Sequence record: LC768500.1
DNA: 64,000 nt
Direction: 5' to 3' (one strand)
Shown: one piece after another, positions 4,703 through 31,145 of the stretch
How the letters are laid out: every line of letters starts with the position of its first letter
How positions within the stretch are numbered: the stretch's first letter is position 1
The notes under the pieces: generated by a model
The model's database searches: none
What the model saw: the letters and a program-made list of their open reading frames with translations, nothing else
What the model was told of the DNA's origin: nothing
Translations under genes and position numbers: made by a program

Positions 4703-4732
4703 ACTTTTTTGTTTTTAGAATAGGAGGGTGTA

Positions 4733-5986
4733 GTGCACGATGATTTTTATGACCGCCATGACCACGTTTTCGTTTTCGTGCAAAAATTTGATTTAGCTCA
4801 TCCTGAACTAATAGACCGAACCGTAGAGGAGAAATTCGAAATTTATACTAAGGACTATCCCGATTATGATTGTTGGGCTCAACTGGTTTATTATTTCAAG
4901 GACGGCGGGGTGTTTTCACCAGAAGGGGTGAGACTTTCAATGAGGGGGATGGTGGTTTCTCCGTTGAAAAGACTCAACCGACCCATCCACGAAAGAATAA
5001 ACGAAATGGTGTTCAGGGAAGGGGCGAAAAAACAGTCAGGTTATCCTAGGATAATGATCGGCGATTTAGGACTTTCAATGCACAGACTGATCGCATCTAC
5101 TTTCATAAAAAGACCCGATCATTTAAAGCTTATCCCATTTATGCTTTTACACGTCAATCATAAAAATGGGATTAAGAACGATTACAGACCTAATAACTTA
5201 GAATGGACTACTCCTAAGGAAAACGCGATCCATAGCGCCATGACGGGACTCACGCCACAGGGACTAGCCCACACAAAAACAATATCGGTACTCGGGTTCT
5301 TCTCTTTACCAGGAAAGTGGTTCGGGAAAACCATTTCATTTAGTGGAAATAAAGAGATTAATTCCGCAGAACTGTTTTCTCAAACAATGATACACGAAAA
5401 GGTTAGGGAAGGTGGGTTGTACAAGGGTTTTAAGTGGATTAGCGTATCTGAAGAAGAGTATAACAACCATCCACACGGTTTAGAAGATCCAGAATTTAAG
5501 AGATTTATCGACGAAGGGGGAAACACTTACCTTGATGAAAGAACTAATTTTCTTATAGGGACAGTGATTCACGAATGCGCTTATAAAGGGCTGCAATTTA
5601 TTATTTTCGGTGAAACAATGATCGAGCGTAACGGATTCCCGGCTAATCGTTTAATGGAGTTTTATAAATCCAAAGAATCGGATTCTTATTTATCAAAGGG
5701 ATGTCTTTTTGTGAGGGGGGATCTGTCCGACCTTGAAAAATTTCCGCGTGGAATACCCGATGAGCTGGTAACCATTTTATCTAGGGAGAGGGGAGATAAG
5801 TTCTATCCCGTGATCGCCAATAAAGATGGAGAGGATAAGTTATTTGCATCTAAAGAAGAGTTATCCGCGAACGGGTTTATTTATAAAGAGGTTAAGAAAA
5901 ATATACGGGGAGAGACGGGAAGTCATAGGGGTCACGCATTCAGATGGGCGGAACGATTATCGGGGTCGTTCCAACCGTCAGACTAG
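4733..5986 (+). CDS. Free-standing HNH homing endonuclease
   Basis: HRLIASTF...HVNHKNGIKNDYRPNNLEWTTPKENAIH; GGGAGG RBS before GTG. Confidence 0.85.
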   Translation: MHDDFYDRHDHVFVFVQKFDLAHPELIDRTVEEKFEIYTKDYPDYDCWAQLVYYFKDGGVFSPEGVRLSMRGMVVSPLKRLNRPIHERINEMVFREGAKKQSGYPRIMIGDLGLSMHRLIASTFIKRPDHLKLIPFMLLHVNHKNGIKNDYRPNNLEWTTPKENAIHSAMTGLTPQGLAHTKTISVLGFFSLPGKWFGKTISFSGNKEINSAELFSQTMIHEKVREGGLYKGFKWISVSEEEYNNHPHGLEDPEFKRFIDEGGNTYLDERTNFLIGTVIHECAYKGLQFIIFGETMIERNGFPANRLMEFYKSKESDSYLSKGCLFVRGDLSDLEKFPRGIPDELVTILSRERGDKFYPVIANKDGEDKLFASKEELSANGFIYKEVKKNIRGETGSHRGHAFRWAERLSGSFQPSD

Positions 5987-6119: not shown

Positions 6120-8174
6120 TCAAAATAAATCCATGACGTTAGAGAGATATTTATTTAACGGTAATGTTTCTGATTCATTATTCATGATATCAAATGACTC
6201 ATTGCCGTCTATAACACGTAATGCTGGGTTATTAAGAGAACTCTGAGCTAATAATTGCTCGACGTTCTCTTTAGACCACTGCATGATATCTACGCTTCTG
6301 GTCATGATGTTTATTTCATTTCCAGTATCGAGTTCAATTAACCAGAAGAAACAAGGGGCGTCCTGCCCCTGTCTAAAGATCCTCGCCTTGGTTTGTTTCA
6401 TTTCGTAATCGCGCCAAGGGGCGTCCATCATAATCTCCTGATTTGCAACGACCATGTGCGCCCCTTCCTTTAGGGTCTTAAAGGTCGTAACCCCAGGATT
6501 ATACGTCGGATCATCAGTGAATATACTAATGAGTTTCTCTTTACTTAATTCTGCGTCCCCGTAAACGAGTAAGGGTTTTAATCCCTCTTCCTTAAGATAA
6601 GTGTTAACTTCATTAAGGACGTCGACATAAGAAGTAAAGATTAATGTTTTCTTTTCTACCTGATTAATAAGCCCTGGAAGATTAGCATGCCTTACTACTG
6701 ATCTGACCGCATCAATCCTCGCTTTACCCAAGACATTCCCTAACGCCTCACCTTTGATCTTTAATCCCACATATTTTACTGCTGATTTAATATTTCTGAA
6801 TTGTTTCAGTTTATCTCCTCGTAAGCGGGCTTCAATATCGATCTCGACGTTCTTAGCATATTGAGAGTCTTCGGAGTCGGTGAAGTTATTATATCCTTGT
6901 GTTCTGAACTTATTAACGATCTGACGATAACGAACCAATCTTCCTAATTGGGATGGATCGTCTTTTACATAATGTTCGTAATCTTCCAGAACGTGATTAA
7001 AGAAATTGAGGAACGTTGGCATGTTTGTTTCGTAAAACTTAACACGCTGTTGTATGTAAGCTAACATGTCAAGTCGTATTGCTTTTAGAGTGAATCTTTC
7101 TCCGCCGGGTACGACGACTGGAAGCATGACTACGTCAGGTTCTTCATCTAGCCCCACAACGCTGTCTATGACGTATCTCGTCTTTCCTAAGCGATGGGCG
7201 AGCAATTCATTGAGTTTATCTCTGGACAAGCCATAGGACTTCAGGAAGCGTTCTCGGGCATTGCCTTTAAAGAATGGATCGATCGCACAGAACATCGGAT
7301 ATGTTTCTTTCCCGGAATTTTTTAACAAGGTTCCGCTCATAGGCAGAGCGTCTTTAAAGTCGAAGTGGTCTACAACGGAAATCAAGTTTTGCGTTTGTTT
7401 AGAGGAAAGTTCGTTAAAGTTATGGCTTTCATCGATAACAAGGTCGACCCCACCGTTGCCAGCAAACTCAAAAATGCGTTCCACCGCTTTAAAGAAATCC
7501 GGTGATCGGGTGGCTTCGATATGGAATACGTAATATTCGGCGTCTCTATCCAACGGTCTATTTTGTCGAGTGGTCCAGTATTTGGGGGGAGTGACGAATA
7601 CCTTTTCTTCAATGTGAAATTTCCAAACTGTATTTAGCACAACGTCAGGAGCAATAATGATATGTTTCTTATTCCCCGTCAGACGCGTCCACATTAAGGC
7701 CGTAGGCGTTTTTCCTGAACCAGGTTTAGCGTCTAATAGCAATCCCTTTAGGTGATAAGATGACTTAATTCCTTTATACATTTCTAAGAACCCCATCTGA
7801 GTAGGATGTGGTTTTATTTTAAACTGCTTTAAAAAAGAAGCTTTGTCTATCGGATAAGCTGTAGGGGTAACGGTATCCTTTATCCAAGTATCCGTTCTGA
7901 GTTTAATTTGGAGTTCGTTAAGGTTCTTGCGACTACTCCAGGTATTTCTTGACTGGAGTATCTTTGTTATTAGATGATCCAACTCCAATAAGAAAAAGTT
8001 ATCCGTAACGAACTTATTGGACCCAACACGTCTGAACATATAACGACCTGGCGTGCTTGTACCATACGCGGTCTGTATGTCGTCATTAAAGTTACGGAAG
8101 TTAACATGATTGATTTCCGTAATAGTCGGTCCTTGTTTAACATCAGGCCCAAAGATATAGTTTAACATCACCAA
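6120..8174 (-). CDS. SF2 (SNF2/DEAD-like) helicase
   Basis: DAKPGSGKT motif I, VIDESH motif II, SGT motif III, QTKARIFRQGQ motif VI; ATG at 8168 is an alternative start. Confidence 0.85.
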   Translation of the reverse strand: MVMLNYIFGPDVKQGPTITEINHVNFRNFNDDIQTAYGTSTPGRYMFRRVGSNKFVTDNFFLLELDHLITKILQSRNTWSSRKNLNELQIKLRTDTWIKDTVTPTAYPIDKASFLKQFKIKPHPTQMGFLEMYKGIKSSYHLKGLLLDAKPGSGKTPTALMWTRLTGNKKHIIIAPDVVLNTVWKFHIEEKVFVTPPKYWTTRQNRPLDRDAEYYVFHIEATRSPDFFKAVERIFEFAGNGGVDLVIDESHNFNELSSKQTQNLISVVDHFDFKDALPMSGTLLKNSGKETYPMFCAIDPFFKGNARERFLKSYGLSRDKLNELLAHRLGKTRYVIDSVVGLDEEPDVVMLPVVVPGGERFTLKAIRLDMLAYIQQRVKFYETNMPTFLNFFNHVLEDYEHYVKDDPSQLGRLVRYRQIVNKFRTQGYNNFTDSEDSQYAKNVEIDIEARLRGDKLKQFRNIKSAVKYVGLKIKGEALGNVLGKARIDAVRSVVRHANLPGLINQVEKKTLIFTSYVDVLNEVNTYLKEEGLKPLLVYGDAELSKEKLISIFTDDPTYNPGVTTFKTLKEGAHMVVANQEIMMDAPWRDYEMKQTKARIFRQGQDAPCFFWLIELDTGNEINIMTRSVDIMQWSKENVEQLLAQSSLNNPALRVIDGNESFDIMNNESETLPLNKYLSNVMDLF

Positions 8175-19810: not shown

Positions 19811-20929
19811 ATGGATTTAAATCCCAGTAGTATTTTTGACAACATCGATTTTAATTCTCCCGTATCCGACATTAAAAAAGAGGCGGATACTAAACTCGCC
19901 GATTTAAAAGGTAGCGTCCTTAACCCTATCAGCTCTAGTACCGCAAGGATTAAAGACGGCATCGCCCTGTTAAACAACATGGACACTAAGTTTAACCAAG
20001 CGGTAACAGGATTTAAATCTGACGTCATGGGTGTCGCTAACAGTATTATCGGCACCCTTCAAGATGGATACTTCACCATTAATGAATTAGTGAGTATGGT
20101 CATAGGGGCTTACACCAGCCTGACTAATCTCGCTAACATTGGTGATGATCTCAAATCCATACTGGGGACTAACGTCAGTAATATCGACGGGTTCTTAGAT
20201 CGGTTCAGCAACATCTTCGTCAGTAGCATCAACTCGAAGGTAAGAGCGAGCGGGTACAAATCCAATACGGTTAGTAGCGGTGGCGAATTCCTCACCATCA
20301 CTCAGAGTAATAATAATCCGTCTTCCCAAGCCATCATCGCAGCGTTGGGCAAGCTGTCAGTAGGCGATCTTCAGGATTCTTACGATAGTTCAGTTTCCAC
20401 CGCGGTATACAGCACCCTCTTAGCACAAGCCGTTTCCAGTGGATTGACTTCTTCCTACGCCGATCTTTATAACAAGATCACGGATAAAACCGAAGCCGAT
20501 AAGGCAGTTGTCTCGGCAATAGGTAACGCCCTTGCTAACGGCGATCTGACTTCAATTGAAAATCTCTTAGCGTTGATTACTAACAGCGGAGCGAAACTCA
20601 CTATTGGTTCCACCTATCCCAATGCTGCCGAAACCCTGTTAAGTAAATATAAACCTCTGGATTCTCAAGATGTTTCAGATTACCCGGCTATCTCCGAACA
20701 GCTGAAAACTATTTTGGTTCTCTTCGGGGGAGTGAATTGGTGGAAGGTTTACACCGCATTAGGTTGGGTTCCTAATTTACTTATCGCTTCTAAGCTCTCA
20801 AGTAGTGTCAGAGATATTTGGATGGAAGACGCCGAGCTCTTTGCATTAGTGGCTTGCAAAGGTTTCTTTAAAGAGATGACCGCACGTAAAGCCTTCTTAA
20901 CCAACTTTCCACAAACCCCGATAAGTTAA
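19811..20929 (+). CDS. Putative virion structural protein
   Basis: TAGGA RBS; Ser/Asn-rich helical 372-aa ORF; call is from context. Confidence 0.6.
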   Translation: MDLNPSSIFDNIDFNSPVSDIKKEADTKLADLKGSVLNPISSSTARIKDGIALLNNMDTKFNQAVTGFKSDVMGVANSIIGTLQDGYFTINELVSMVIGAYTSLTNLANIGDDLKSILGTNVSNIDGFLDRFSNIFVSSINSKVRASGYKSNTVSSGGEFLTITQSNNNPSSQAIIAALGKLSVGDLQDSYDSSVSTAVYSTLLAQAVSSGLTSSYADLYNKITDKTEADKAVVSAIGNALANGDLTSIENLLALITNSGAKLTIGSTYPNAAETLLSKYKPLDSQDVSDYPAISEQLKTILVLFGGVNWWKVYTALGWVPNLLIASKLSSSVRDIWMEDAELFALVACKGFFKEMTARKAFLTNFPQTPIS

Positions 20930-20964
20930 ATAACTACCGTCTCCCTTTGGGAGACGGTAGTTAT
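20930..20964. terminator. Bidirectional terminator, TAACTACCG family
   Basis: ATAACTACCGTCTCCC-ttt-GGGAGACGGTAGTTAT (16 bp). Confidence 0.85.
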
Positions 20965-20980
20965 AATTAGATCATTTTTT

Positions 20981-21004
20981 TTATCTTGGGAACTGCTGAT
21001 GGAA
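20981..21004 (-). pseudogene. Dead 3' remnant (FHQQFPR*) of the 22146-24296 gene
   Basis: Minus strand ttc cat cag cag ttc cca aga taa vs the live end tgg cac caa caa ttt ccg agg taa at 22146-22169. Confidence 0.8.
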
Positions 21005-21005
21005 A

Positions 21006-22058
21006 TCACTCTCGCTCAATTCTTTTAATAAAATAATTCTTATACATTCCATTGTTCCGATAAGACCGATTCAGGTTAGCCGAGTTGGTTCCGAAATTGG
21101 TTAACTCTATTGTTCCGGTTAGTCTGGTGACGCACTTAGTGCGTTTATGAGTCAATTCCCATATCACTCTGTCAGACCTATTCGACTTCCTCCCGGTTCT
21201 ATCGTAATTATAATCTCTTATTGCATTTATCAAATTCTGCTCGGGATCTTTATAGTGTTTGGTGTACTCTTCCTTGGTTACCTCTTCCCATTTACATCCC
21301 TTATAGGTTTTAGCTTTACCTGTCCTAATGGCGTGAAGATTACGATTATCCAATCCAAATTTAGCGCATTGTTCCTTGCCGCAAACGTATATCACTCTTT
21401 TCTTGAATCCTGGGATATCAATCACAGTACCTTTCATGGGAATGACGAAAGGATGCGACAAGTGCTTATGGGATACAAGGAGGTTATTCTCTTTGGCATG
21501 TTGCTTGTTCTGTTGTGGCGTGGTCCATTCTAATGAATTTACGTCGTTATCATCCTTTCCCTTTAAGTGGTTAACTTCAAGTTCAGAATAATCGTAAAGA
21601 TTGAGCTCATCAGGTTTTGGAATCCAGGACGACGCAACGATCCTGTGCACCATCATTACGTATCCTGATTTCATATATACTTTATAACCAAAATGGCTAA
21701 ACGTTCCTTTAACCATTTTGTACGTTCTTAAATTAAAAATTCTACCTCTGTTACTCACCCAAATATAAGTAAAAGATGTTGATGTTTTCTTATTAATATT
21801 GAGGTTCTTCGGGCTGTACGGAAAATAACTTGCCGGAACCCAATACTCTGATCTGGGATCTTCTTTTAATAATTTTGTTAACTTGGCATAATAAGCTTTC
21901 TTACGTTCTTCGTGCGATAAAAGATTCAATAAAGCGTTAGCCTTTTTTCCCATCGCATCAATAATAGATTTATATTCTTTAACAAATAACGGGAGATTTC
22001 CTCTAGCTATTTCATCCCATTCTTCTTCAGTTCTTATTCGCGGCGGTCTGATTTTCAT
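21006..22058 (-). CDS. Free-standing HNH homing endonuclease
   Basis: VSNRGRI, HRIVASSW, EVNHLKGKDDNDVNSLEWTTPQQNKQH; GGAG RBS favours ATG 22058 over 22091. Confidence 0.85.
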   Translation of the reverse strand: MKIRPPRIRTEEEWDEIARGNLPLFVKEYKSIIDAMGKKANALLNLLSHEERKKAYYAKLTKLLKEDPRSEYWVPASYFPYSPKNLNINKKTSTSFTYIWVSNRGRIFNLRTYKMVKGTFSHFGYKVYMKSGYVMMVHRIVASSWIPKPDELNLYDYSELEVNHLKGKDDNDVNSLEWTTPQQNKQHAKENNLLVSHKHLSHPFVIPMKGTVIDIPGFKKRVIYVCGKEQCAKFGLDNRNLHAIRTGKAKTYKGCKWEEVTKEEYTKHYKDPEQNLINAIRDYNYDRTGRKSNRSDRVIWELTHKRTKCVTRLTGTIELTNFGTNSANLNRSYRNNGMYKNYFIKRIERE

Positions 22059-22145
22059 GGTTACACTGCTCCAGATTACATTATTTATCATATAATAAGA
22101 AGCAGTGGTTTTCCATTAACAATACAAACCCTTGATATTAAAGGG

Positions 22146-24296
22146 TTACCTCGGAAATTGTTGGTGCCAGACGCGTCCAATATCTCCGATAATCGAGTCG
22201 TTCACAATACCCGCGATATTACCCGCAGAAACAGACTGACTTATCGAGTTCTTAGCCGTGGTTAATCTCCTTGATAATTTGTTCCATCTTAAAACGGTAT
22301 CAAGGTAATCCGACCCGGATAATCTCGTAATGTAGTCGGTATATTTCCCGGTATCGATCAACATCCTGTTAACCGCTTCAGCAGGGTTCGTCATATCGAG
22401 TAAGGAGACCGCCCTGGAGATAGGAAGCGAGACATGTTTTTCTAAATCGACAAAGGAGATATCAACAGTACAGTTCAACGGTTTACGGTCTTTCTTCCAA
22501 CCACCAACACCTTGTCCAAAGGAGATCGTTGCGGAATCGACCATACACGTTCTCATGATGGCACGACTCTTAGAAAAGATCTTACACAGGAAGGGTGATG
22601 TGTGAGCTGAAGGACCTGCGCTTAACGGCAGAATGATCGGCATCAATAATGATAGCGGAACCCAGATATTCATCAGTTGCGAATAAGGGTGTGCGTAAGT
22701 CGCCTCAAAATAGAAACGATAAGTTTCTTTATGTAGGTTTGCTGACGATTCGGCCCAGTGATCAGGAATGTTGATATAAGAGTTGTTCATTAACGCCATG
22801 GGAATGTTAGCGATCCCTATGGAGTTAATACCACCCATAGCAACTTCTTTCAAACCACTAATAACGCCGTCAACAACACCAACGCCTGTCATTCCTCCGG
22901 CTAAATCAAAACGAAGATCGTTAGCCGCTTTTGACATACTGTTGAATTTATCCGCTACGGCTGACTGGGTGGCAGAGTTAGAGAAGTTATCCGTTACCTC
23001 ACCTAAATGTTCTACTCGCCAAGTAATAGCATCTAGACCGCCGTACCAAGATGTTTTAACGAGATCAGCAACTTGTCCCGCCCACGAAGAGTCAGTGACG
23101 TTATCCGTAGCCGCAGTTAATCTCGCTGTAACGGATTCCAGACTCTCCGAAGCAGAGGAGAACTCACCTTGCCCGGAAGAGGCCGTGGTGGTCGTTCCAC
23201 TTCCGTCAGTATTCATTGACGAAGCATCCGATGGTGCGGCAGTCGCCGTCCCTGTCCCGGTCGTATCCGTGGTAATTGCTTGCGGGAGTATGCTCGTGTA
23301 AGCATCTTGATCGGTAAATGCCGAGGCTTTCTCCGGGTAATACCCTTCTTCTTTAGCACGATATTTACCGGTGGTGTTCAATTCCTTTTGCATCAACTCA
23401 TTGACACCATACTGTTTCCCAGAGAGAGTTTCGGCATTGAACTGGATGTTTTTGGCAATATCTGCCATCGCATCGTATTTTTCCTGAGCGGAGTTAATGA
23501 TGCGTTCGTTGAGCTTCTCAATTTCGGATAAGAACTTCCGATATTTTCTCGTCCCTAGTGAGACCAGTCGAATAACGTCTATTGTTCCGTCGTCGTTAAT
23601 ACAGTCCGGAAATAATGCGTTTAATCGCGCTATTTCATTATAGTAATTCCCGGCTTCTTCTGGGTCAACACCATTGATAGGCGCTCCTGGCGGTTTCTTA
23701 ATAGCAAGAACGGGTTTTATAAATCCTTGAGCTGTAGCAACGTCGTTTAAGAAGTTATTAGCTGCAGTCAGGTACATCCCCATGCTAGGCTTCACGTAAT
23801 AATACTGATTACGCGGAGTATCCATGAGGAAGTCTAAGAACGTCATCCCGATGCTGATCAGCTGGATGGGCCAGAATGCCAAAGTCCCTAACCCCTGACC
23901 GAAATAAAACGCCAGGCTGGGGCTACGGCCTTTATTAGCCTGAATAGCTGCTACTGGGTCGAACATGCGTTCTAAGAAAGTCAGTATCCCTGTGAATTCT
24001 GGAACACCAACAGTGATGGTAAGAAGAGACGCATTATCGTCATAGATCTTCTTATACTGTGTTCCCATCCCGCCGTATGAGGAAGACAAAAATTGGGAAT
24101 AACGGGGGTCTGTCGCCGGCCCAAATTGAGGGACTGGGTTGATGTACCGGTTATCCCCAATCGCACTACTGAAAAAGTTGTAATAAAGGTCTTTGTTAAG
24201 GTGATCTCGGATAGTGACGTTATCTATCCCAGTGCACATTAATTTGAAAGACTTAGCGATGAGATTTCTATCTCGTAAAGATATGCTGTTAGCCAC
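22146..24296 (-). CDS. Tail/baseplate-associated virion protein (phiKZ gp182-like position)
   Basis: 716 aa, directly downstream of the giant tail lysin gene; Thr/Ser-rich central linker. Confidence 0.65.
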   Translation of the reverse strand: MANSISLRDRNLIAKSFKLMCTGIDNVTIRDHLNKDLYYNFFSSAIGDNRYINPVPQFGPATDPRYSQFLSSSYGGMGTQYKKIYDDNASLLTITVGVPEFTGILTFLERMFDPVAAIQANKGRSPSLAFYFGQGLGTLAFWPIQLISIGMTFLDFLMDTPRNQYYYVKPSMGMYLTAANNFLNDVATAQGFIKPVLAIKKPPGAPINGVDPEEAGNYYNEIARLNALFPDCINDDGTIDVIRLVSLGTRKYRKFLSEIEKLNERIINSAQEKYDAMADIAKNIQFNAETLSGKQYGVNELMQKELNTTGKYRAKEEGYYPEKASAFTDQDAYTSILPQAITTDTTGTGTATAAPSDASSMNTDGSGTTTTASSGQGEFSSASESLESVTARLTAATDNVTDSSWAGQVADLVKTSWYGGLDAITWRVEHLGEVTDNFSNSATQSAVADKFNSMSKAANDLRFDLAGGMTGVGVVDGVISGLKEVAMGGINSIGIANIPMALMNNSYINIPDHWAESSANLHKETYRFYFEATYAHPYSQLMNIWVPLSLLMPIILPLSAGPSAHTSPFLCKIFSKSRAIMRTCMVDSATISFGQGVGGWKKDRKPLNCTVDISFVDLEKHVSLPISRAVSLLDMTNPAEAVNRMLIDTGKYTDYITRLSGSDYLDTVLRWNKLSRRLTTAKNSISQSVSAGNIAGIVNDSIIGDIGRVWHQQFPR

Positions 24297-24338: not shown

Positions 24339-27300
24339 TTATTTGCTCGTATACCCCATCCTAGGATCTGGAGCTTTCTGGTTCTGGATTTCTTTAAGCA
24401 ATTGAGCGAGTAAATCGTTAGTTCTTCCTTGGGCTTGAACTTGAGCCGTTGCGACCGGATCGGGTTGCTGAACCGGTTTAGCCAACGGAGTTGGCGGCGC
24501 AGAAGTACTTTGCTCGGTCGGGACCTTAACACGATTAAGTGGGTTAGCCGGATCGGATTTGTACGCGACCGATCCCTCACTCACCGGGGTAGAAGGCACA
24601 GCTCCGATAGGTTTAGGTCCTTGATTAACCGACGGAGTAGTAATCGCTGAAACTGCCGCGACACTGTTAGCTGTTCCTACGTTTTCCGATTTCATCGTAG
24701 GCGGTTTGGCGTCAGGGCTGACAGAGGAAACCGAACTCGGAGGAGTTTCCCCAGAAGAGGAAGGCGTCGCTCCAGCATTAGGATCCACCGTCAACTCATT
24801 GGAAGTCAAACGTTTCATATACTGCTGATAAAGTCTTGTCCTCGCCGGCATATCAGGCAAGCCGTTGGGGTTAAGTCCTTGAGCTGCATATTCAAACGAG
24901 TTGTTCTTCACAATGGACTGAAGTCGTTTACCAGTCGAGCCGTTGGAGAGATACCAGATCAAGGTTTTCGCCATGACTTCTGGATCAGTAGAAACTAACT
25001 CTGGATTCTTAACGAGGTCTTTCCCCACATACTGAGAGGCAGCTCTGAAGTTATCCTTACCCGTAAGCTGAATGAACCCACGGCCTCTGTAAAGCCATCC
25101 GTCGTTAGGACCACTGTTACCCAACCTACCGCCATAAACCGCGTTAGCGATGGCCTGAGGGCCACCAGCCACGATCTGCTGGGCCTGCCCCATCGACTTC
25201 ACTCTACCTGGGAAAATTTCCAACAGCCGACCTGGCTTGTAGTTCATGTTTTCCGCGGTATTCTTAAATCCTCCGCTTTCAAAGTTAGCCAGAGCTAACA
25301 TTTCAGCAATAAGACGAGGATCCGTGAAGCCGGCCTTAATCATCTCCTTCATGATTAATTGCTCTGCGGCTTTCTGGGGAACGCTAACACCTTTGTCTCC
25401 ACCTCCCGACCCGCCTACCGGAGTGACACCAGAAAGATCAACTGTCGACGTATCGGTATTACCCGTAATAGGTTTATAGTTGATGACTGGCTGACCGCCC
25501 GCGATGACGTTATCGCCCATTGCAGCGGTCGCAACAGCCTGATTTAATCCACCCTCACCCATTGAGTGAGCCGAGGTATACGGAACGACTTCTTTAGCTC
25601 CAGAAGCTTTAACTTCTTTGTCACCAAAATTCAATTTCGCATTCTTCGCGGCGGTATCGAGGTTATTAACGATTGCTTTAACCTGAGGTGTGATCGACCC
25701 AGAAGTTGTATTAGGGAACGGCGACCATTTAACCTCCCAAACGGAAGTTGGGGTTTTACCGATATTCACTTTGAGCCCTAAAAGCTCTTTTGCGAAATCA
25801 AAAGCGTTAGTGGCAGTCATGGACTTCCAACCCGCGCTTGGTTTCACCCCCCTCATGATCCTCACGTATTTCACCCACGCCATACAGACTGGGAGGAAAC
25901 GATCCCGGAACCACGTACACCATTGGTTAGCTTGGTCGTCAGTTATTCTGAATGAGTTCTTAAAGAGGTTATACACCGCACCTGTGGTAGAAGTGAATCT
26001 AGCGTCGTTACCGATTACACTGATGTAATCCTCACAATACCGTTCTAACTTCAACACAGCTTCAACACGCCATGGGATGTGTTCCGTGTCACCGTAGGCT
26101 GCTAATCTTAATGCGGTTATCCCGGCCAGAGGTTTATCGCCCCCTGGTAAAAGATCGGTGATGTTAATTTCCATAACCGATTTTGTTACCGGATAACGTT
26201 TATTGATCTCTTCAATATCAGAACGATCCTCGTACGTCCCACCCACTCTCATTTTAAGACTAGACCACCAACCTGCCTTCTCAGATTTTTCAACCTGTTC
26301 GGCGGAGGTCTTCATGGTCACAATGCCTTCTTTCTCTATCCCCTCAGCTGTTCTTCCGTGTCTTTCGTTAAAGCTTTTCAGTTCGTCCAAATACAACCTA
26401 ACCTGATTAATGGTTTGGTCTTTACCCATTATAGGTGTGGCTTCATCGAACTGAGCGGCTATCTGATAAGGATAAGGATTGATGGTACCGATCCTGTCGT
26501 TGATGGTGGAAACAGTAGAGTACAATTTAGCGTCGGTCGATTTATCGAACGTCTCAAAATCCCTGTACCCCGCGGTATCGATCGCAGAAGCGTAAGTCAG
26601 GAAAATAGGTTTGAAACGAAGATTAAACCAAGTGAAGTAAGCCTGCTGCTGGCCCTTGTCATTGGCTTGAGGTATGAAGCTTTGGAATATCTGTTCGAGA
26701 GGAGCTGATTTAGCTATTGAAGCCACCCCAGCGGTTACGACGACATATTCACGTAATGCTTCTTCGGCAGATCTGATCTTAGCGGCTAAATCTGACTCGA
26801 CGTCCTTGATACCATATTGAGCCATACGAAGTTTGAACTGCGACCCTTTGCCTTTGGCGTAATACTTATAGATCAAATACCCGGCAACTGCAACTGCCCC
26901 AATCCCCAACGTTACTGGATTAAATAACAGAGGAGCGACGGCAGTAGCCAAAGCACCTGTACCCGATACAATAGCCGACCCGGCAGCACTCGCACCAGAA
27001 GCAATAGCTGATCCGATCCCGAGGTTAATCCCCATAGCCGACATGGCGCTAGAACCCAAAGATACCGCCGAAGCCGCAGTAAGCGTATTGCTCGCCACAT
27101 CCTTCCAGTTAGTCCCTTCGTGTTCTTCATTGGTGGCGTCGAGGTACATTCCTAATCCAGCGGTAGCCAAACCCGCTAAGCCGAATTTAAATGCCCTTCC
27201 TCTACCTACCCTACCGCCTCTAGTTCTTCTTCCTCTACGTCGGCCTGAAGCCCCTCCTGCAGCATCAACAATATCGTCAACACCATCAGATGCCCGGCGA

Positions 27301-30300
27301 CCTAACAGACCAACAGTAAGGATCTTAGCTAACGACGTTAATCCACTTACAATAGCGGGTAGAGTGGTGATACCGAGGGTTAAGAATTTGGAGAGTTTAA
27401 CACCAAGTCCGGCGACCCCACCCAAAATAGTTCCCATGGGGTTCTTAACGAAACCCAAGAGACCATTAAGGAATCCGCCACCTTTCTTCTCTTCATCGGG
27501 AGAACCGGAACCTCTCTCTCCTTCTCTATGACCGGCGAGATCGATAATAGCGTCCTGATAACGAGATTCACGTTCAGCTTTCGCTTTACGTTCCTTATCT
27601 TCTAAAGAGTTTAAGCGAACATCATCCGTGTTTCCCATTCGGCTTGTTTCATTAACAATATCAGCCTTGATATCCGGCATGTCGTTAATGTCATAACCAA
27701 ACTTACGGCAAAGCAGAGCGTAAATACGATCGACCGAATTGGTAATAGGCGTATAGTCCGCGGTTACAAGATCGTTGATCTTATCTCCAGCTCGCTTACC
27801 GTAACCTTTAGCTCGATCACCCAGTTTCCTGCCCAGGTCAAGAAGTTTACCACCCATTACTCCCGTCATACGTTTGAGGGATTCTATTTTCATCCCCCCT
27901 GATGTAATGAGCCCATCCTCGTATTCGGCTTGGGTAATAATGACGTCGCCGTTCTCATCATACACCGGTCCGTCGATATCTCTCCAACCCTTTACAGGAA
28001 CAACGCTACCATTCAAACGTTTGAAGTATTTACCGTTCTCAAAACCCTTCCTTGTCAGAACAGGGGAATCCTCTCCGACTCGATAAACATCCATTTGGGT
28101 TATTCGATTGGTAATACCCTGACCTATGCCTTTCAATCGGTTAAGAGGATCTAACCAGTTAAAGAGTTTTAATCCGGCTGATTTCACCGCGTTTAAGCCA
28201 CGAAGCACGACGGCCTTGCCTTCGGCACTGAACAGTTTACCCGAAAGACGTTTAGCGGAGATCACGACCTTGGTTCCGAGATCAACGATCGATCCTTTGA
28301 TCTCTTTCCAGCTGGTGATAATTTTCTTTAAAACTTTGTCGTAATACTGACGAGCTCTGAGTTTACGCGCTTCGAGTATTGGATCTTCACTCTCCCCATC
28401 GTAAATGTCTTCATCGTCACTGACGTCTCTGGCGTCCGCCATACTACGAACTTTGGTATATAACGCCCAGGCTGCAGCACCACCACCGATCAACGCCGCT
28501 GTTTTAGGATCGTGAATCGCCAATCCCGCTAACCCACCTAACATCCCACCCAGCATCAGTGGTTCGTGAGCCAGCAGTTTATCCATGCCAGCACTGAAAA
28601 TATCCTTAATCCCACCAAGACTTTTAATGCGGTCGAGGATGGTTTTCTTCTGTGCGGTATCAGCGGCATCTTCAGCATCAGTTTTGGGCTTATTCACTTC
28701 GGCTGGCTGACGAGAAAGGATTTGTTTCAGGACTTCCAATTGTTCCTGATTAATATCCCTTATTCCCATTACAGAATCCGTTAAAGATTTAACTTGCTCT
28801 GGGCTTAATGCATTTCCATCTTGTCTGCCGGGAATCCCGAGTTTAAGCTGCTCGGTGAGTTCCGATAGGGCGGTAACTAATTTACCGGAATCCTTCCCGG
28901 ACAACCCACGACGGTTATTGATAATGGTTTTCGAATTACCCCCACCCATTCCACCACGAGTAGGGAGAGGGCCTACGTCATCCTCTTCGATAAGGCCTTC
29001 GTTACCATTAAGCTCTGATTTTAACCGGTCCCATATCGCATCGGTGTTAAAGAAATCTGACCCGTTTTCACTATTAATCAAATTCATTTCTCTTAATAGT
29101 GGATCGTAACCAGCGTTTCGTAACAAATCGATTTGCTGAGAAATATTAGGGAGATAGCCTTTGAGGTTTTTGGCTCGCAGACTAAGATCGGCCGCCAAAC
29201 GTTTACTTTTAGCGGTCGGCATGTTCAACTGAGCTTTAATACCAGCCAGCCCAGATTTTTTAGCCGCTTCAATATGCTGGTCGGTTAACCTGAACGACCC
29301 CCGCATCACTTGTTCAATTTCTTTACGAATCGATGGAGTTAGCCCGTCTTCGTCTTCCATCCCGAAATAGTTGAACGGGTTGAATCCTTTATCTTGGTCA
29401 ACGTCTCTCGCCAAACGATAAGATAAGAAACGTTTAGCTTCTGGTGACAACGTCCCATTTTTGTCAATGACAGAAACCATGTCGGACGTACCTGAGGCCA
29501 ACCCACTAAATTCTCTCCCATTCAACAAATTACGTTTAACCGCATTTTGGGTTTGTTTATGGCTTAAGAACTTCCCACTGCGATAATCGAAGCGCTCTTC
29601 TTTCAGGTTATCATTACCCGTGCGTATCTTTTCCAAGCTCAGATGAAGCTTAGCGAACCACCCAGGAATGATTTCATTTAACGTACGATCGGATTGACTG
29701 CTCCAGTAGCTTGGCTGAGTCAAATCCATCAAGTTACGTTTCTTGAGTTCGTACTGTTTACCGCGGGAATCGTTGATATTAAAAGAAAGATCGTTTAACC
29801 TATTTCCCAGGAAATTTTTACCTGTTTGTTTTAAACGCCACGCTCTTTCACTTAACCGTTTTTCACCGGGAGCAAGTGAGTCAAGGTAATCGTCGTAGGT
29901 AGAAAAGTCTTCTTCGTAGTTAGCGTTATTGCGGAGAATGGTTCCTGCTAAACCAGCCGCGTTAGTTCCAGCGTATGACAGAACGCTACCCAACTGTTCC
30001 AACTTGCGATATTGCCGGCGGATGTTTTTGGCTTCTTTTGGATAGAGGGTCGCAAGTTTATTAATAAGCTTAGCACCCTGCCCAGATTTAAAGAAAGCTG
30101 GTCCTCTCTCAATGACCTCGTTAGCTAGCATCTGCCCGATAATGGTTCCCATATTGAGACCCATTCCTTCGGACATCTCCATCCCCATTCTACCCGCGCC
30201 AACCATTCCGCTTAAACCAGAAAGCATTCCTTCTCTGGCTTCTTTACCGAACGTCTCGGACAGATAACCCATCACCCCACCGGACCTACGTCCGATTGTG

Positions 30301-31145
30301 GAGAAGATGGAATCACGCAATCTACCTTTAGCTGCCATAGCCAGGGAAGTTTTCTCGTAATCACTCTTACCCGAATTAAGAGTGATCTTTTTAAGCTCGT
30401 CAATCTGACGATGCATCGAGGCTTCCATGAACTTGTAGTATTTAGCGTTGGTTAAATGCATCCGAGCCAATAAGTTGATTTTAACCGCATCGTTCTTAGC
30501 CTGGATTTTATTCTGGTAACGCAAAATACCTTGAAGGGTGGTCGAGATCCCGCCTAACAGCGAATTGGTTGCTTGTTGCTGAGCTAATTGACGACCGCCA
30601 ACTACCGCGGTCATGTTGTTGATAGCCCGCCCAATACCCACCATTGTTCCTGTCTGCTGGGCCGTAACTCCGCTTATAAAACCGGCTAAGCCATCTTCAT
30701 CGACTTCTCCCATACTTGGATCAGAAGGCGTGTATCCTCCTTGATCCCAATGGCTAAAGTCCTTATTGCTGAAGGTCTCCAACCCCTGGGCAATTTTATT
30801 AGGAGCCTTGTCGCCGTGGCGGTCTAAGGTCATCTGAGCAATTGCCTGGAGATCTTCCACCATATCTTTTGATCCGGCTTTGACCTCACTTAGGATCTCC
30901 TGCTTCTTCCAATCAAACTCTCTTTTTAAATCAAAGACAGTCCCAAATGATTTTGGGAGGAGCATTTTAGCCGTTCTCAACCTACCTTCTGAACTTCCTA
31001 TCGTACCGCTGTGGAGCTCACTGAGAAAACCGCTCCCCATGCTCGCAAAGAAACCTTTTTTAGGTGCGTTATCGAAGTCGAAGTCGAAATCTATATCGCC
31101 GGCGAATGGGTCGTCTCCCCAATCGTCGAAATCATCTTTAGCCAT
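24339..31145 (-). CDS. Tape-measure-like tail protein with C-terminal GH19 peptidoglycan hydrolase (phiKZ gp181-like)
   Basis: 2268 aa, Gly/Ala-rich hydrophobic tracts; ANFESGG...ANAVYGGRLGN...DGWLYRGRGFIQLTGKDNF; divergent from vRNAP beta'. Confidence 0.85.
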   Translation of the reverse strand: MAKDDFDDWGDDPFAGDIDFDFDFDNAPKKGFFASMGSGFLSELHSGTIGSSEGRLRTAKMLLPKSFGTVFDLKREFDWKKQEILSEVKAGSKDMVEDLQAIAQMTLDRHGDKAPNKIAQGLETFSNKDFSHWDQGGYTPSDPSMGEVDEDGLAGFISGVTAQQTGTMVGIGRAINNMTAVVGGRQLAQQQATNSLLGGISTTLQGILRYQNKIQAKNDAVKINLLARMHLTNAKYYKFMEASMHRQIDELKKITLNSGKSDYEKTSLAMAAKGRLRDSIFSTIGRRSGGVMGYLSETFGKEAREGMLSGLSGMVGAGRMGMEMSEGMGLNMGTIIGQMLANEVIERGPAFFKSGQGAKLINKLATLYPKEAKNIRRQYRKLEQLGSVLSYAGTNAAGLAGTILRNNANYEEDFSTYDDYLDSLAPGEKRLSERAWRLKQTGKNFLGNRLNDLSFNINDSRGKQYELKKRNLMDLTQPSYWSSQSDRTLNEIIPGWFAKLHLSLEKIRTGNDNLKEERFDYRSGKFLSHKQTQNAVKRNLLNGREFSGLASGTSDMVSVIDKNGTLSPEAKRFLSYRLARDVDQDKGFNPFNYFGMEDEDGLTPSIRKEIEQVMRGSFRLTDQHIEAAKKSGLAGIKAQLNMPTAKSKRLAADLSLRAKNLKGYLPNISQQIDLLRNAGYDPLLREMNLINSENGSDFFNTDAIWDRLKSELNGNEGLIEEDDVGPLPTRGGMGGGNSKTIINNRRGLSGKDSGKLVTALSELTEQLKLGIPGRQDGNALSPEQVKSLTDSVMGIRDINQEQLEVLKQILSRQPAEVNKPKTDAEDAADTAQKKTILDRIKSLGGIKDIFSAGMDKLLAHEPLMLGGMLGGLAGLAIHDPKTAALIGGGAAAWALYTKVRSMADARDVSDDEDIYDGESEDPILEARKLRARQYYDKVLKKIITSWKEIKGSIVDLGTKVVISAKRLSGKLFSAEGKAVVLRGLNAVKSAGLKLFNWLDPLNRLKGIGQGITNRITQMDVYRVGEDSPVLTRKGFENGKYFKRLNGSVVPVKGWRDIDGPVYDENGDVIITQAEYEDGLITSGGMKIESLKRMTGVMGGKLLDLGRKLGDRAKGYGKRAGDKINDLVTADYTPITNSVDRIYALLCRKFGYDINDMPDIKADIVNETSRMGNTDDVRLNSLEDKERKAKAERESRYQDAIIDLAGHREGERGSGSPDEEKKGGGFLNGLLGFVKNPMGTILGGVAGLGVKLSKFLTLGITTLPAIVSGLTSLAKILTVGLLGRRASDGVDDIVDAAGGASGRRRGRRTRGGRVGRGRAFKFGLAGLATAGLGMYLDATNEEHEGTNWKDVASNTLTAASAVSLGSSAMSAMGINLGIGSAIASGASAAGSAIVSGTGALATAVAPLLFNPVTLGIGAVAVAGYLIYKYYAKGKGSQFKLRMAQYGIKDVESDLAAKIRSAEEALREYVVVTAGVASIAKSAPLEQIFQSFIPQANDKGQQQAYFTWFNLRFKPIFLTYASAIDTAGYRDFETFDKSTDAKLYSTVSTINDRIGTINPYPYQIAAQFDEATPIMGKDQTINQVRLYLDELKSFNERHGRTAEGIEKEGIVTMKTSAEQVEKSEKAGWWSSLKMRVGGTYEDRSDIEEINKRYPVTKSVMEINITDLLPGGDKPLAGITALRLAAYGDTEHIPWRVEAVLKLERYCEDYISVIGNDARFTSTTGAVYNLFKNSFRITDDQANQWCTWFRDRFLPVCMAWVKYVRIMRGVKPSAGWKSMTATNAFDFAKELLGLKVNIGKTPTSVWEVKWSPFPNTTSGSITPQVKAIVNNLDTAAKNAKLNFGDKEVKASGAKEVVPYTSAHSMGEGGLNQAVATAAMGDNVIAGGQPVINYKPITGNTDTSTVDLSGVTPVGGSGGGDKGVSVPQKAAEQLIMKEMIKAGFTDPRLIAEMLALANFESGGFKNTAENMNYKPGRLLEIFPGRVKSMGQAQQIVAGGPQAIANAVYGGRLGNSGPNDGWLYRGRGFIQLTGKDNFRAASQYVGKDLVKNPELVSTDPEVMAKTLIWYLSNGSTGKRLQSIVKNNSFEYAAQGLNPNGLPDMPARTRLYQQYMKRLTSNELTVDPNAGATPSSSGETPPSSVSSVSPDAKPPTMKSENVGTANSVAAVSAITTPSVNQGPKPIGAVPSTPVSEGSVAYKSDPANPLNRVKVPTEQSTSAPPTPLAKPVQQPDPVATAQVQAQGRTNDLLAQLLKEIQNQKAPDPRMGYTSK

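Follow-up and report, generated by a model that had tools for sequence, protein, structure and literature searches.

In fungal mitochondria, mobile open reading frames (mORFs) that bring a foreign gene C-terminus have been described at atp6 of Allomyces macrogynus and at atp6, atp9, cox2 and nad3 of Glomus (PMC3630166). In T4-like phages, the free-standing homing endonucleases SegB, SegF, SegG and MobE spread by homing without an intron, and flanking markers are co-converted (PMC2988022, PMC2790892, PMC2330249). PhiPA3 gp210 acts between co-infecting phiKZ-like phages, and a single base change in its target lowers nicking (PMC11620839). Here, we analyzed a 64,000-nucleotide stretch of sequence record LC768500.1 (hereafter the window), which is 100% identical to phiKp_32, a 251-kb Klebsiella jumbo phage of the Miami group. 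In it, an HNH homing endonuclease gene lies between a virion structural protein gene and a second copy of that gene's last codons. The arrangement probably arose when a mobile I-HmuI-like HNH cassette carrying a substitute gene end inserted into the virion gene and left the original end behind as a short stub.

The core of the locus consists of the following features, numbered by position in the window:
22146..24296, minus strand: intact gene for a 716-amino-acid virion structural protein, the host gene of the insertion and an orthologue of Pseudomonas phage EL gp182
22146..22191, minus strand: imported substitute 3' end, comprising the last 15 codons (IIGDIGRVWHQQFPR) and the stop, and containing the live WHQQFPR*
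21006..22058, minus strand: free-standing HNH homing endonuclease gene, 350 amino acids, I-HmuI-like (phrog_59, E 2.8e-21)
20981..21005, minus strand: stub, by synteny the structural gene's original 3' end, now displaced: (T)TTC CAT CAG CAG TTC CCA AGA TAA, non-coding here
20930..20964, no strand assigned: resident bidirectional terminator hairpin, common to all relatives, at which the right-hand homology starts

On the minus strand, the live gene ends with TGG CAC CAA CAA TTT CCG AGG TAA (WHQQFPR*, 22169-22146). A second FHQQFPR* is read at 21004-20981, where a single base, T21005, separates the TGA of the HNH gene (21008-21006) from the frame of the stub. A six-frame reading of the window contains exactly two copies of HQQFPR*; ~3e-5 extra copies would be expected by chance. 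The locus was compared with that of four close relatives lacking the HNH gene (Miami, KPN8, YC1 and BUCTxx100), of the three Miami-like genomes that carry it (phiKp_32, the Raoultella phage VB_ZK_P1 and L011, a 253-kb metagenome contig) and of an EL-like set, in which Pseudomonas phage HHBS8_1 has an HNH gene at the orthologous locus and EL and HHBS47_1 do not. The insertion is thus a presence/absence polymorphism among near-identical phages.

In Miami, KPN8, YC1 and BUCTxx100, the gene ends ...ILNDVGRLFHQQFPR*, with the codons TTC CAC CAA CAA TT(C/T) CCA AGA TAA, and in all four this end joins directly the A-run, spacer and terminator found after the phiKp_32 stub. The stub is identical to the gene end of Miami, YC1 and KPN8 at 22 of 25 nucleotides and continues without a break into the downstream sequence also found there: an A-run followed by a strong hairpin (20964-20930) that is shared with the convergent 372-amino-acid gene. 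That terminator is present in every HNH-free and HNH-bearing relative and is annotated as a terminator in Miami. None of the four HNH-free relatives has a second copy of the gene end. Given this synteny, the second HQQFPR* copy is not a chance match, and because the four HNH-free relatives end in FHQQFPR* fused to the same downstream terminator, the comparison showed that the 25-nucleotide stub is, as judged by its position, the resident gene's original end.

These results bear out a first-pass annotation of the DNA, which had reported that HQQFPR* is duplicated across the HNH gene, with a terminator at 20964-20930, and had taken the stub to be the original end: both copies were read directly, and none of the HNH-free orthologues combines the live codons with a retained stub. 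Two of its details fell away. An aga gtg (RV) upstream of the stub, which it had matched to the live RV, lies in the tail of the HNH open reading frame (ORF; IERE*, homologous to IEPE of VB_ZK_P1) and is a coincidence, the original end reading R-L-F in relatives, not R-V. Its term "tail gene" is not established, the evidence being a match to the structural protein family phrog_3181. Separately, MAFFT aligned the last HNH codons with the displaced part of the structural gene; we judged this a chance alignment, as HHBS8_1 has the conserved HNH tail as well but an unrelated flank.

The live end, by contrast with the gene body, is strongly diverged from the relatives. Its last 45 nucleotides differ from those of HNH-free relatives at 12-15 positions (27-33%, or ~67-73% identity), compared with 2.5-3.5% over the 2010 nucleotides upstream, and the boundary is sharp, ~46 nucleotides before the stop (Fisher p 1e-8 to 1e-12). 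Between phiKp_32 and YC1, the next difference upstream of the diverged end is 193 nucleotides from the gene end. Within the diverged tract, ILNDVGRLF has become IIGDIGRVW, with five residues changed, and the new residues resemble those of the wider family (DSVIGDISKVF in Vibrio phage Aphrodite1 and DSIVGDIARIF in N1M2). Because the last ~46 nucleotides are 27-33% diverged against 2.5-3.5% upstream, the comparison showed that the live end is foreign by its divergence and arrived with the cassette; its source was a functional orthologue in some diverged phage. In both phiKp_32 and the EL-like pair, HNH-bearing loci show a diverged flanking tract beside the endonuclease gene, as in co-conversion.

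The direct repeat that flanks the inserted gene might instead be a target-site or local duplication of resident sequence made at insertion, with the copies diverging later. We consider this very unlikely. The live copy lies within a 46-nucleotide tract that is ~30% diverged with five residues changed, divergence in place would not limit the changes of a non-coding copy to wobble positions, and the EL-like cassette has no repeat at all; nor did we see any HNH-bearing genome in which live end and stub are identical and the tract upstream is undiverged. Loss in the opposite direction, from an ancestral HNH-bearing state through recombination between live end and stub in the four HNH-free relatives, would account for the chimera-like HNH-free end, with its live-type HQQ codons followed by stub-type FPR codons. 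However, the sequence ahead of HQQ in the HNH-free genomes is ILNDVGRLF and not the live sequence of phiKp_32 or L011, and they have H, not the N of VB_ZK_P1. More distant phages likewise lack the HNH gene here, and divergence is far greater in the cassettes than in their flanks. Such a loss therefore has very little probability, and insertion of a cassette with its own gene end remains the preferred reading.

The inserted gene itself has the character of a mobile endonuclease. Besides phrog_59, the HNH protein matches phrog_17657 and phrog_959 (PHROGs). A search of PDB with the single HNH protein by phmmer gave chance matches only, and a profile of the four HNH homologues was needed to reach I-HmuI (1U3E, E 1.1e-7, profile positions 99-259), which it matched over nearly the whole of I-HmuI. 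H164, N171 and N184 of the HNH motif are invariant in the four homologues. At default thresholds, Pfam gave no match for the HNH protein, the 716-amino-acid structural protein or its neighbour, and the 350-amino-acid HNH protein had a sub-threshold match to NUMOD4 only. Between phiKp_32 and VB_ZK_P1, the ratio of non-synonymous to synonymous change (dN/dS) in the HNH gene is 0.05 and the proportion of synonymous differences (pS) 0.68, against a pS of 0.29 for a flanking gene in the same genome pair. The comparison showed strong purifying selection on the endonuclease gene, as estimated from these substitutions. Among HNH-bearing genomes, the cassettes are 75-85% identical, compared with 95-100% for the flanks, and synonymous sites in the cassettes are near saturation (pS 0.68-0.77). 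By this measure, the cassettes are much older than the flanks.

The HNH ORF begins 88 nucleotides past the live stop codon. Many I-HmuI-like enzymes are intron-encoded (PMC11620839), and splicing to the stub from a site near GTC could keep the frame, in which case the HNH gene would lie inside a self-splicing intron, the stub would be the true 3' exon and the mature protein would end in FHQQFPR. However, no intron family matched the region, even at E up to 10, and the insert has just ~88 non-coding nucleotides. In three genomes, the live end has retained (H/N)QQFPR* despite synonymous changes and so is translated. Moreover, three stub lengths would demand three different splice sites, and the HNH ORF of VB_ZK_P1 reads through the stub. 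An intron is thus extremely improbable, and the HNH gene can be classed, from its matches and context, as free-standing, neither intron- nor intein-encoded and I-HmuI-like.

Further evidence for insertion came from the other HNH-bearing genomes. VB_ZK_P1 carries an HNH that is 85% identical to that of phiKp_32; its live end is LFNQQFPR*, and its stub is ~16 nucleotides long, with the HNH ORF running through the stub in frame (...EPEQFPR*). L011 carries a third cassette variant, with the live end IIGDVGKIFHQQFPR* and a stub of ~19 nucleotides (CCAACAATTCCCGAGATAA). As an independent case, an HNH homologue (35-37% identical) in the EL-like phage HHBS8_1 lies directly after the orthologous structural gene, where it occupies the intergenic spacer past the gene's own hairpin, and nothing is duplicated there.

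The ends and composition of these HNH genes also vary. In VB_ZK_P1 (L002:3193-3207) and HHBS8_1, the HNH ORF lacks a stop of its own and runs into resident DNA, where it ends: QFPR* of VB_ZK_P1 is stub DNA, and the final six codons of the HHBS8_1 gene (KELIQ*) are resident EL-type spacer DNA. In phiKp_32, the HNH stop falls exactly at the junction. The 5' half of the L011 HNH gene (L011:1616-2680) has ~50% DNA identity to those of phiKp_32 and VB_ZK_P1, whereas for its 3' half, identity to the VB_ZK_P1 gene (L002:2143-3207) is 95-100%. Such mosaic genes suggest that nuclease and DNA-binding halves may have been exchanged between cassettes.

Between the HHBS8_1 and HHBS47_1 structural genes, we counted 12 substitutions in 2.2 kb, all within the final 60 nucleotides, which change LRLAT to ARILS. 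(Elsewhere, the HHBS8_1 gene, on contig L007, has one apparent single-base deletion relative to HHBS47_1; this frameshift explains its annotation as two coding sequences.) The recoded patch aligns with the V-G-R-L-F-H columns of the Miami group. At these columns, every HNH-bearing genome carries at least one residue change, and the left edge of the phiKp_32 stub lies inside them. Because the HHBS8_1 patch, the Miami-like residue changes and the left edge of the stub coincide there, we infer that the enzyme's target site lies in the V-G-R-L-F-H codons, ~20-40 nucleotides before the stop.

The first-pass annotation had also stressed that every wobble base of the duplicated end is changed. Indeed, all six HQQFPR codon pairs differ at position 3 and nowhere else, although neither copy is fully recoded. 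The codons CAC CAA CAA of the relatives agree with the live copy and TTC CCA AGA with the stub; relative to the four HNH-free genomes, the live copy deviates at F, P and R (TTT CCG AGG) and the stub at H, Q and Q (CAT CAG CAG). As the relatives match the live copy at HQQ and the stub at FPR, three of the differences are assigned to the imported live end and the other three to the stub. With independent draws from the codon usage of the window, all six codons would differ with a probability of ~0.033, for a pattern that was noticed post hoc. Across the three genomes with a stub, there are five stub variants, all at third codon positions. Inheritance from ends that once were coding explains them better than does decay, or selection, acting on non-coding DNA, and the pattern neither requires nor demonstrates selection for wobble recoding.

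Complete wobble recoding could nonetheless have been selected in itself, to block recombination between the repeats and excision, or cutting of either copy, or both. The six-of-six difference with its low probability speaks for this explanation, as do the complementary changes (three live and three stub relative to the relatives), the differences at four of five shared codons in L011 and the reduced nicking by the related PhiPA3 gp210 after one base change (PMC11620839). This is a single post hoc case, however, and live end and stub still share CAA TTT CC (8 nucleotides) in VB_ZK_P1 and AGATAA (6 nucleotides) in L011, which argues against a general rule of complete recoding. Synonymous sites of the cassette are near saturation regardless, and selection on non-coding DNA would not need to confine the stub variants to wobble positions. 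A 24-nucleotide repeat is, in any case, a poor substrate for recombination. We thus regard selected recoding as unlikely.

The three causes that the first-pass annotation had suggested for the divergence fared differently. Import from a diverged phage gained direct support for the live copy, with its sharp boundary ~46 nucleotides before the stop. Escape from self-cleavage is plausible, although the comparative signal falls upstream, on V-G-R-L-F-H, not on HQQFPR. Avoidance of recombination found no consistent support, given the identical 6- and 8-nucleotide runs in the two other HNH-bearing Miami-like genomes.

Taking these comparisons together, we propose that the cassette is ~1.19 kb long and consists, in order, of the foreign last 15 codons, a terminator-like hairpin, a regulatory hairpin and the HNH gene. 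The enzyme would nick or cut HNH-free alleles within the V-G-R-L-F-H codons, and repair would copy the donor from the homologous gene body through the diverged gene end and the HNH gene. On first entry into the lineage, the far side of the cassette may have been joined to the broken end without homology; the DNA to the right of the break would then have survived as the stub, which would now move along with the cassette. The substitute end would keep the essential protein intact, and its different sequence would probably shield the carrier genome from its own enzyme, whereas the stub would be safe with the upstream half of the site missing. Under this scheme, the six-of-six wobble differences would be a by-product: three would stem from an old, synonymously saturated cassette lineage, and the other three would be stub variants that arose while the sequence was still coding in an earlier recipient.

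The cassette also appears to carry its own control elements, predicted as two hairpins:
22127..22147, minus strand: terminator-like hairpin of the cassette, overlapping the live stop codon (terminator scan and RNA fold)
22064..22107, minus strand: second hairpin; its 3' arm pairs with GGAG, the ribosome-binding site of the HNH gene at 22072-22069

A hairpin directly after the live stop was predicted in all four cassettes (phiKp_32, VB_ZK_P1, L011 and HHBS8_1), as was a hairpin that pairs with GGAG, with z-scores of -5.2 to -8.9 in three of them. In phiKp_32, the second hairpin has a predicted folding energy of -29.1 kcal/mol (z -5.4) and a compensatory change of G:C to A:U relative to VB_ZK_P1. 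Its interior holds a 17-nucleotide motif (22097-22081) and, within that, TATG (22092-22089). The motif, TATTATATG(A/G)TAAATAA (22081-22097, minus strand), recurs exactly in HHBS8_1 (L007:2745-2761, minus strand), the HNH proteins being only ~35% identical. It has no other occurrence in the window, and its 10-nucleotide start is not enriched there, so it is not a general promoter in the window. TATG is the late promoter motif of phiKZ, and its G is the transcript start (PMC4666361). In I-TevI, segB and mobE of T4-like phages, the ribosome-binding site is sequestered in a hairpin with a late promoter inside it (PMC2988022). Similarly, the hairpin covering the ribosome-binding site may hold back translation of the phiKp_32 HNH gene in read-through transcripts, whereas transcripts initiated at the TATG motif within the hairpin would be free for translation.

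Several points weigh against the proposed history or parts of it. The location of the target is drawn from four HNH-bearing genomes, and of these, three are related to one another. Among the three Miami-like cassettes, the right junction varies, with a difference of 13 nucleotides between phiKp_32 and VB_ZK_P1, reflecting either erosion of the stub after one insertion or several insertion events. Pfam HNH_3 matches two of the four homologues and not the phiKp_32 protein itself, and a single-sequence AlphaFold model was unusable (mean predicted local distance difference test score, pLDDT, 32.8). TATG is a short motif in AT-rich DNA. Finally, with a six-of-six probability of ~0.03, a modest contribution of selection is possible. 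A broader interpretation, which we offer with low confidence, is that one HNH lineage tracked the conserved C-terminal motif of this virion protein across phiKZ- and EL-like genera. The replaced end or patch would then be an obligatory immunity module, the cassette would be a weapon against co-infecting relatives and a driver of C-terminal change, and the complementary recoding would have been selected against self-nicking and excision.

The 716-amino-acid protein matches phrog_3181 (E 3.9e-219), a conserved virion structural protein that is annotated in relatives as "putative structural protein". Its orthologues were found across phiKZ/EL-like jumbo phages, and the C-terminus is conserved in the family. 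Upstream lies a gene for a 2268-amino-acid protein (24339-31145, minus strand) that matches a tail fiber family (phrog_3201) and contains, around residues 1930-2140, an endolysin/glycoside hydrolase 19-like domain. To judge from this neighbour, the 716-amino-acid protein would be placed inside a tail/baseplate gene block. The right flank of the insertion is formed by one further gene:
19811..20929, plus strand: convergent gene for a 372-amino-acid protein (phrog_6532)

This convergent gene is syntenic in all relatives and 95-100% identical across HNH-bearing genomes. The loop of the terminator that it shares with the structural gene (20946-20948) is AAA in phiKp_32, YC1, BUCTxx100 and L011 and TTT in Miami, KPN8 and VB_ZK_P1; the stems are identical between the two groups, which amounts to a loop-flip polymorphism. 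A metagenome scan yielded one true relative (L011) and one chance match (L010). No further relatives were found in the IMG/VR scans (two DNA patterns and two protein queries) or in the genome_contigs scan, and an exact-protein look-up of the neighbouring gene matched phiKp_32 alone.

The window contains a second HNH gene (417 amino acids; phrog_59, E 1.5e-20; 4733-5986, plus strand), found at this spot only in phiKp_32. Its insertion site is the 3' end of a convergent helicase gene (6120-8174, minus strand). The resident terminator and TTAGAA, which is the stop and F codon of the resident helicase as in YC1, are left upstream of the second HNH gene, the latter at 4715-4720; downstream, there is a hairpin that is new, and the helicase end (...LSNVMDLF*) is diverged. 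The last 900 nucleotides of the helicase gene are only 53-83% identical to those of YC1. By its arrangement, this insertion is of the same apparent design, with a 6-nucleotide stub.

The phiKp_32 locus documents, at the level of single bases, how the coding end of an essential phage gene can receive a homing endonuclease and stay undamaged. One enzyme lineage at one locus presents two layouts, an HNH gene in the spacer with a recoded patch in the EL-like phage and a replaced gene end with a stub in the Miami-like phages, and the pair narrows the probable target to ~20 nucleotides from sequence alone. For annotation, short duplicated gene ends beside HNH genes should be read as insertion footprints, not as functional repeats.

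Compared with known systems, the process is familiar, and the layout is known from fungal mitochondria; in the literature searched, we found no description of it, or of a displaced gene-end stub, for phages, which is not proof of absence. The mORFs are the closest match in layout. In both, an endonuclease ORF near the 3' end of a conserved gene brings a foreign C-terminus, the native end is displaced downstream, unexpressed and nearer to the sequence of close relatives, and the differences between the two copies are largely synonymous. However, mORFs encode LAGLIDADG or GIY-YIG enzymes in fungal mitochondrial DNA and duplicate tens to hundreds of bases, whereas phiKp_32 has an HNH enzyme in a phage and duplicates only seven codons and the stop. 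Its substitute end also has its own stop and terminator and is not fused to the endonuclease ORF. The likeness is one of working, not membership by descent.

With the T4 type, the phiKp_32 locus shares a free-standing, polymorphic endonuclease gene beside a conserved gene and a diverged flanking tract that moves along with it; its predicted hairpin would also sequester the ribosome-binding site, as in I-TevI, segB and mobE. In the T4 cases, however, the endonuclease gene lies between intact genes with no displaced remnant, whereas the right junction in phiKp_32 lies inside the target gene, and phiKp_32, a jumbo phage related to phiKZ and EL, has another transcription apparatus. As for the enzyme, the HNH profile aligns over almost the whole of I-HmuI (SPO1, PDB 1U3E). 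I-HmuI and gp210 are intron-encoded nicking enzymes, whereas the phiKp_32 HNH protein is free-standing, known from sequence alone and longer by ~95 N-terminal and ~90 C-terminal residues. By its context and profile matches, the phiKp_32 HNH gene belongs with the T4-type intronless homing systems and with the I-HmuI/gp210 enzymes.

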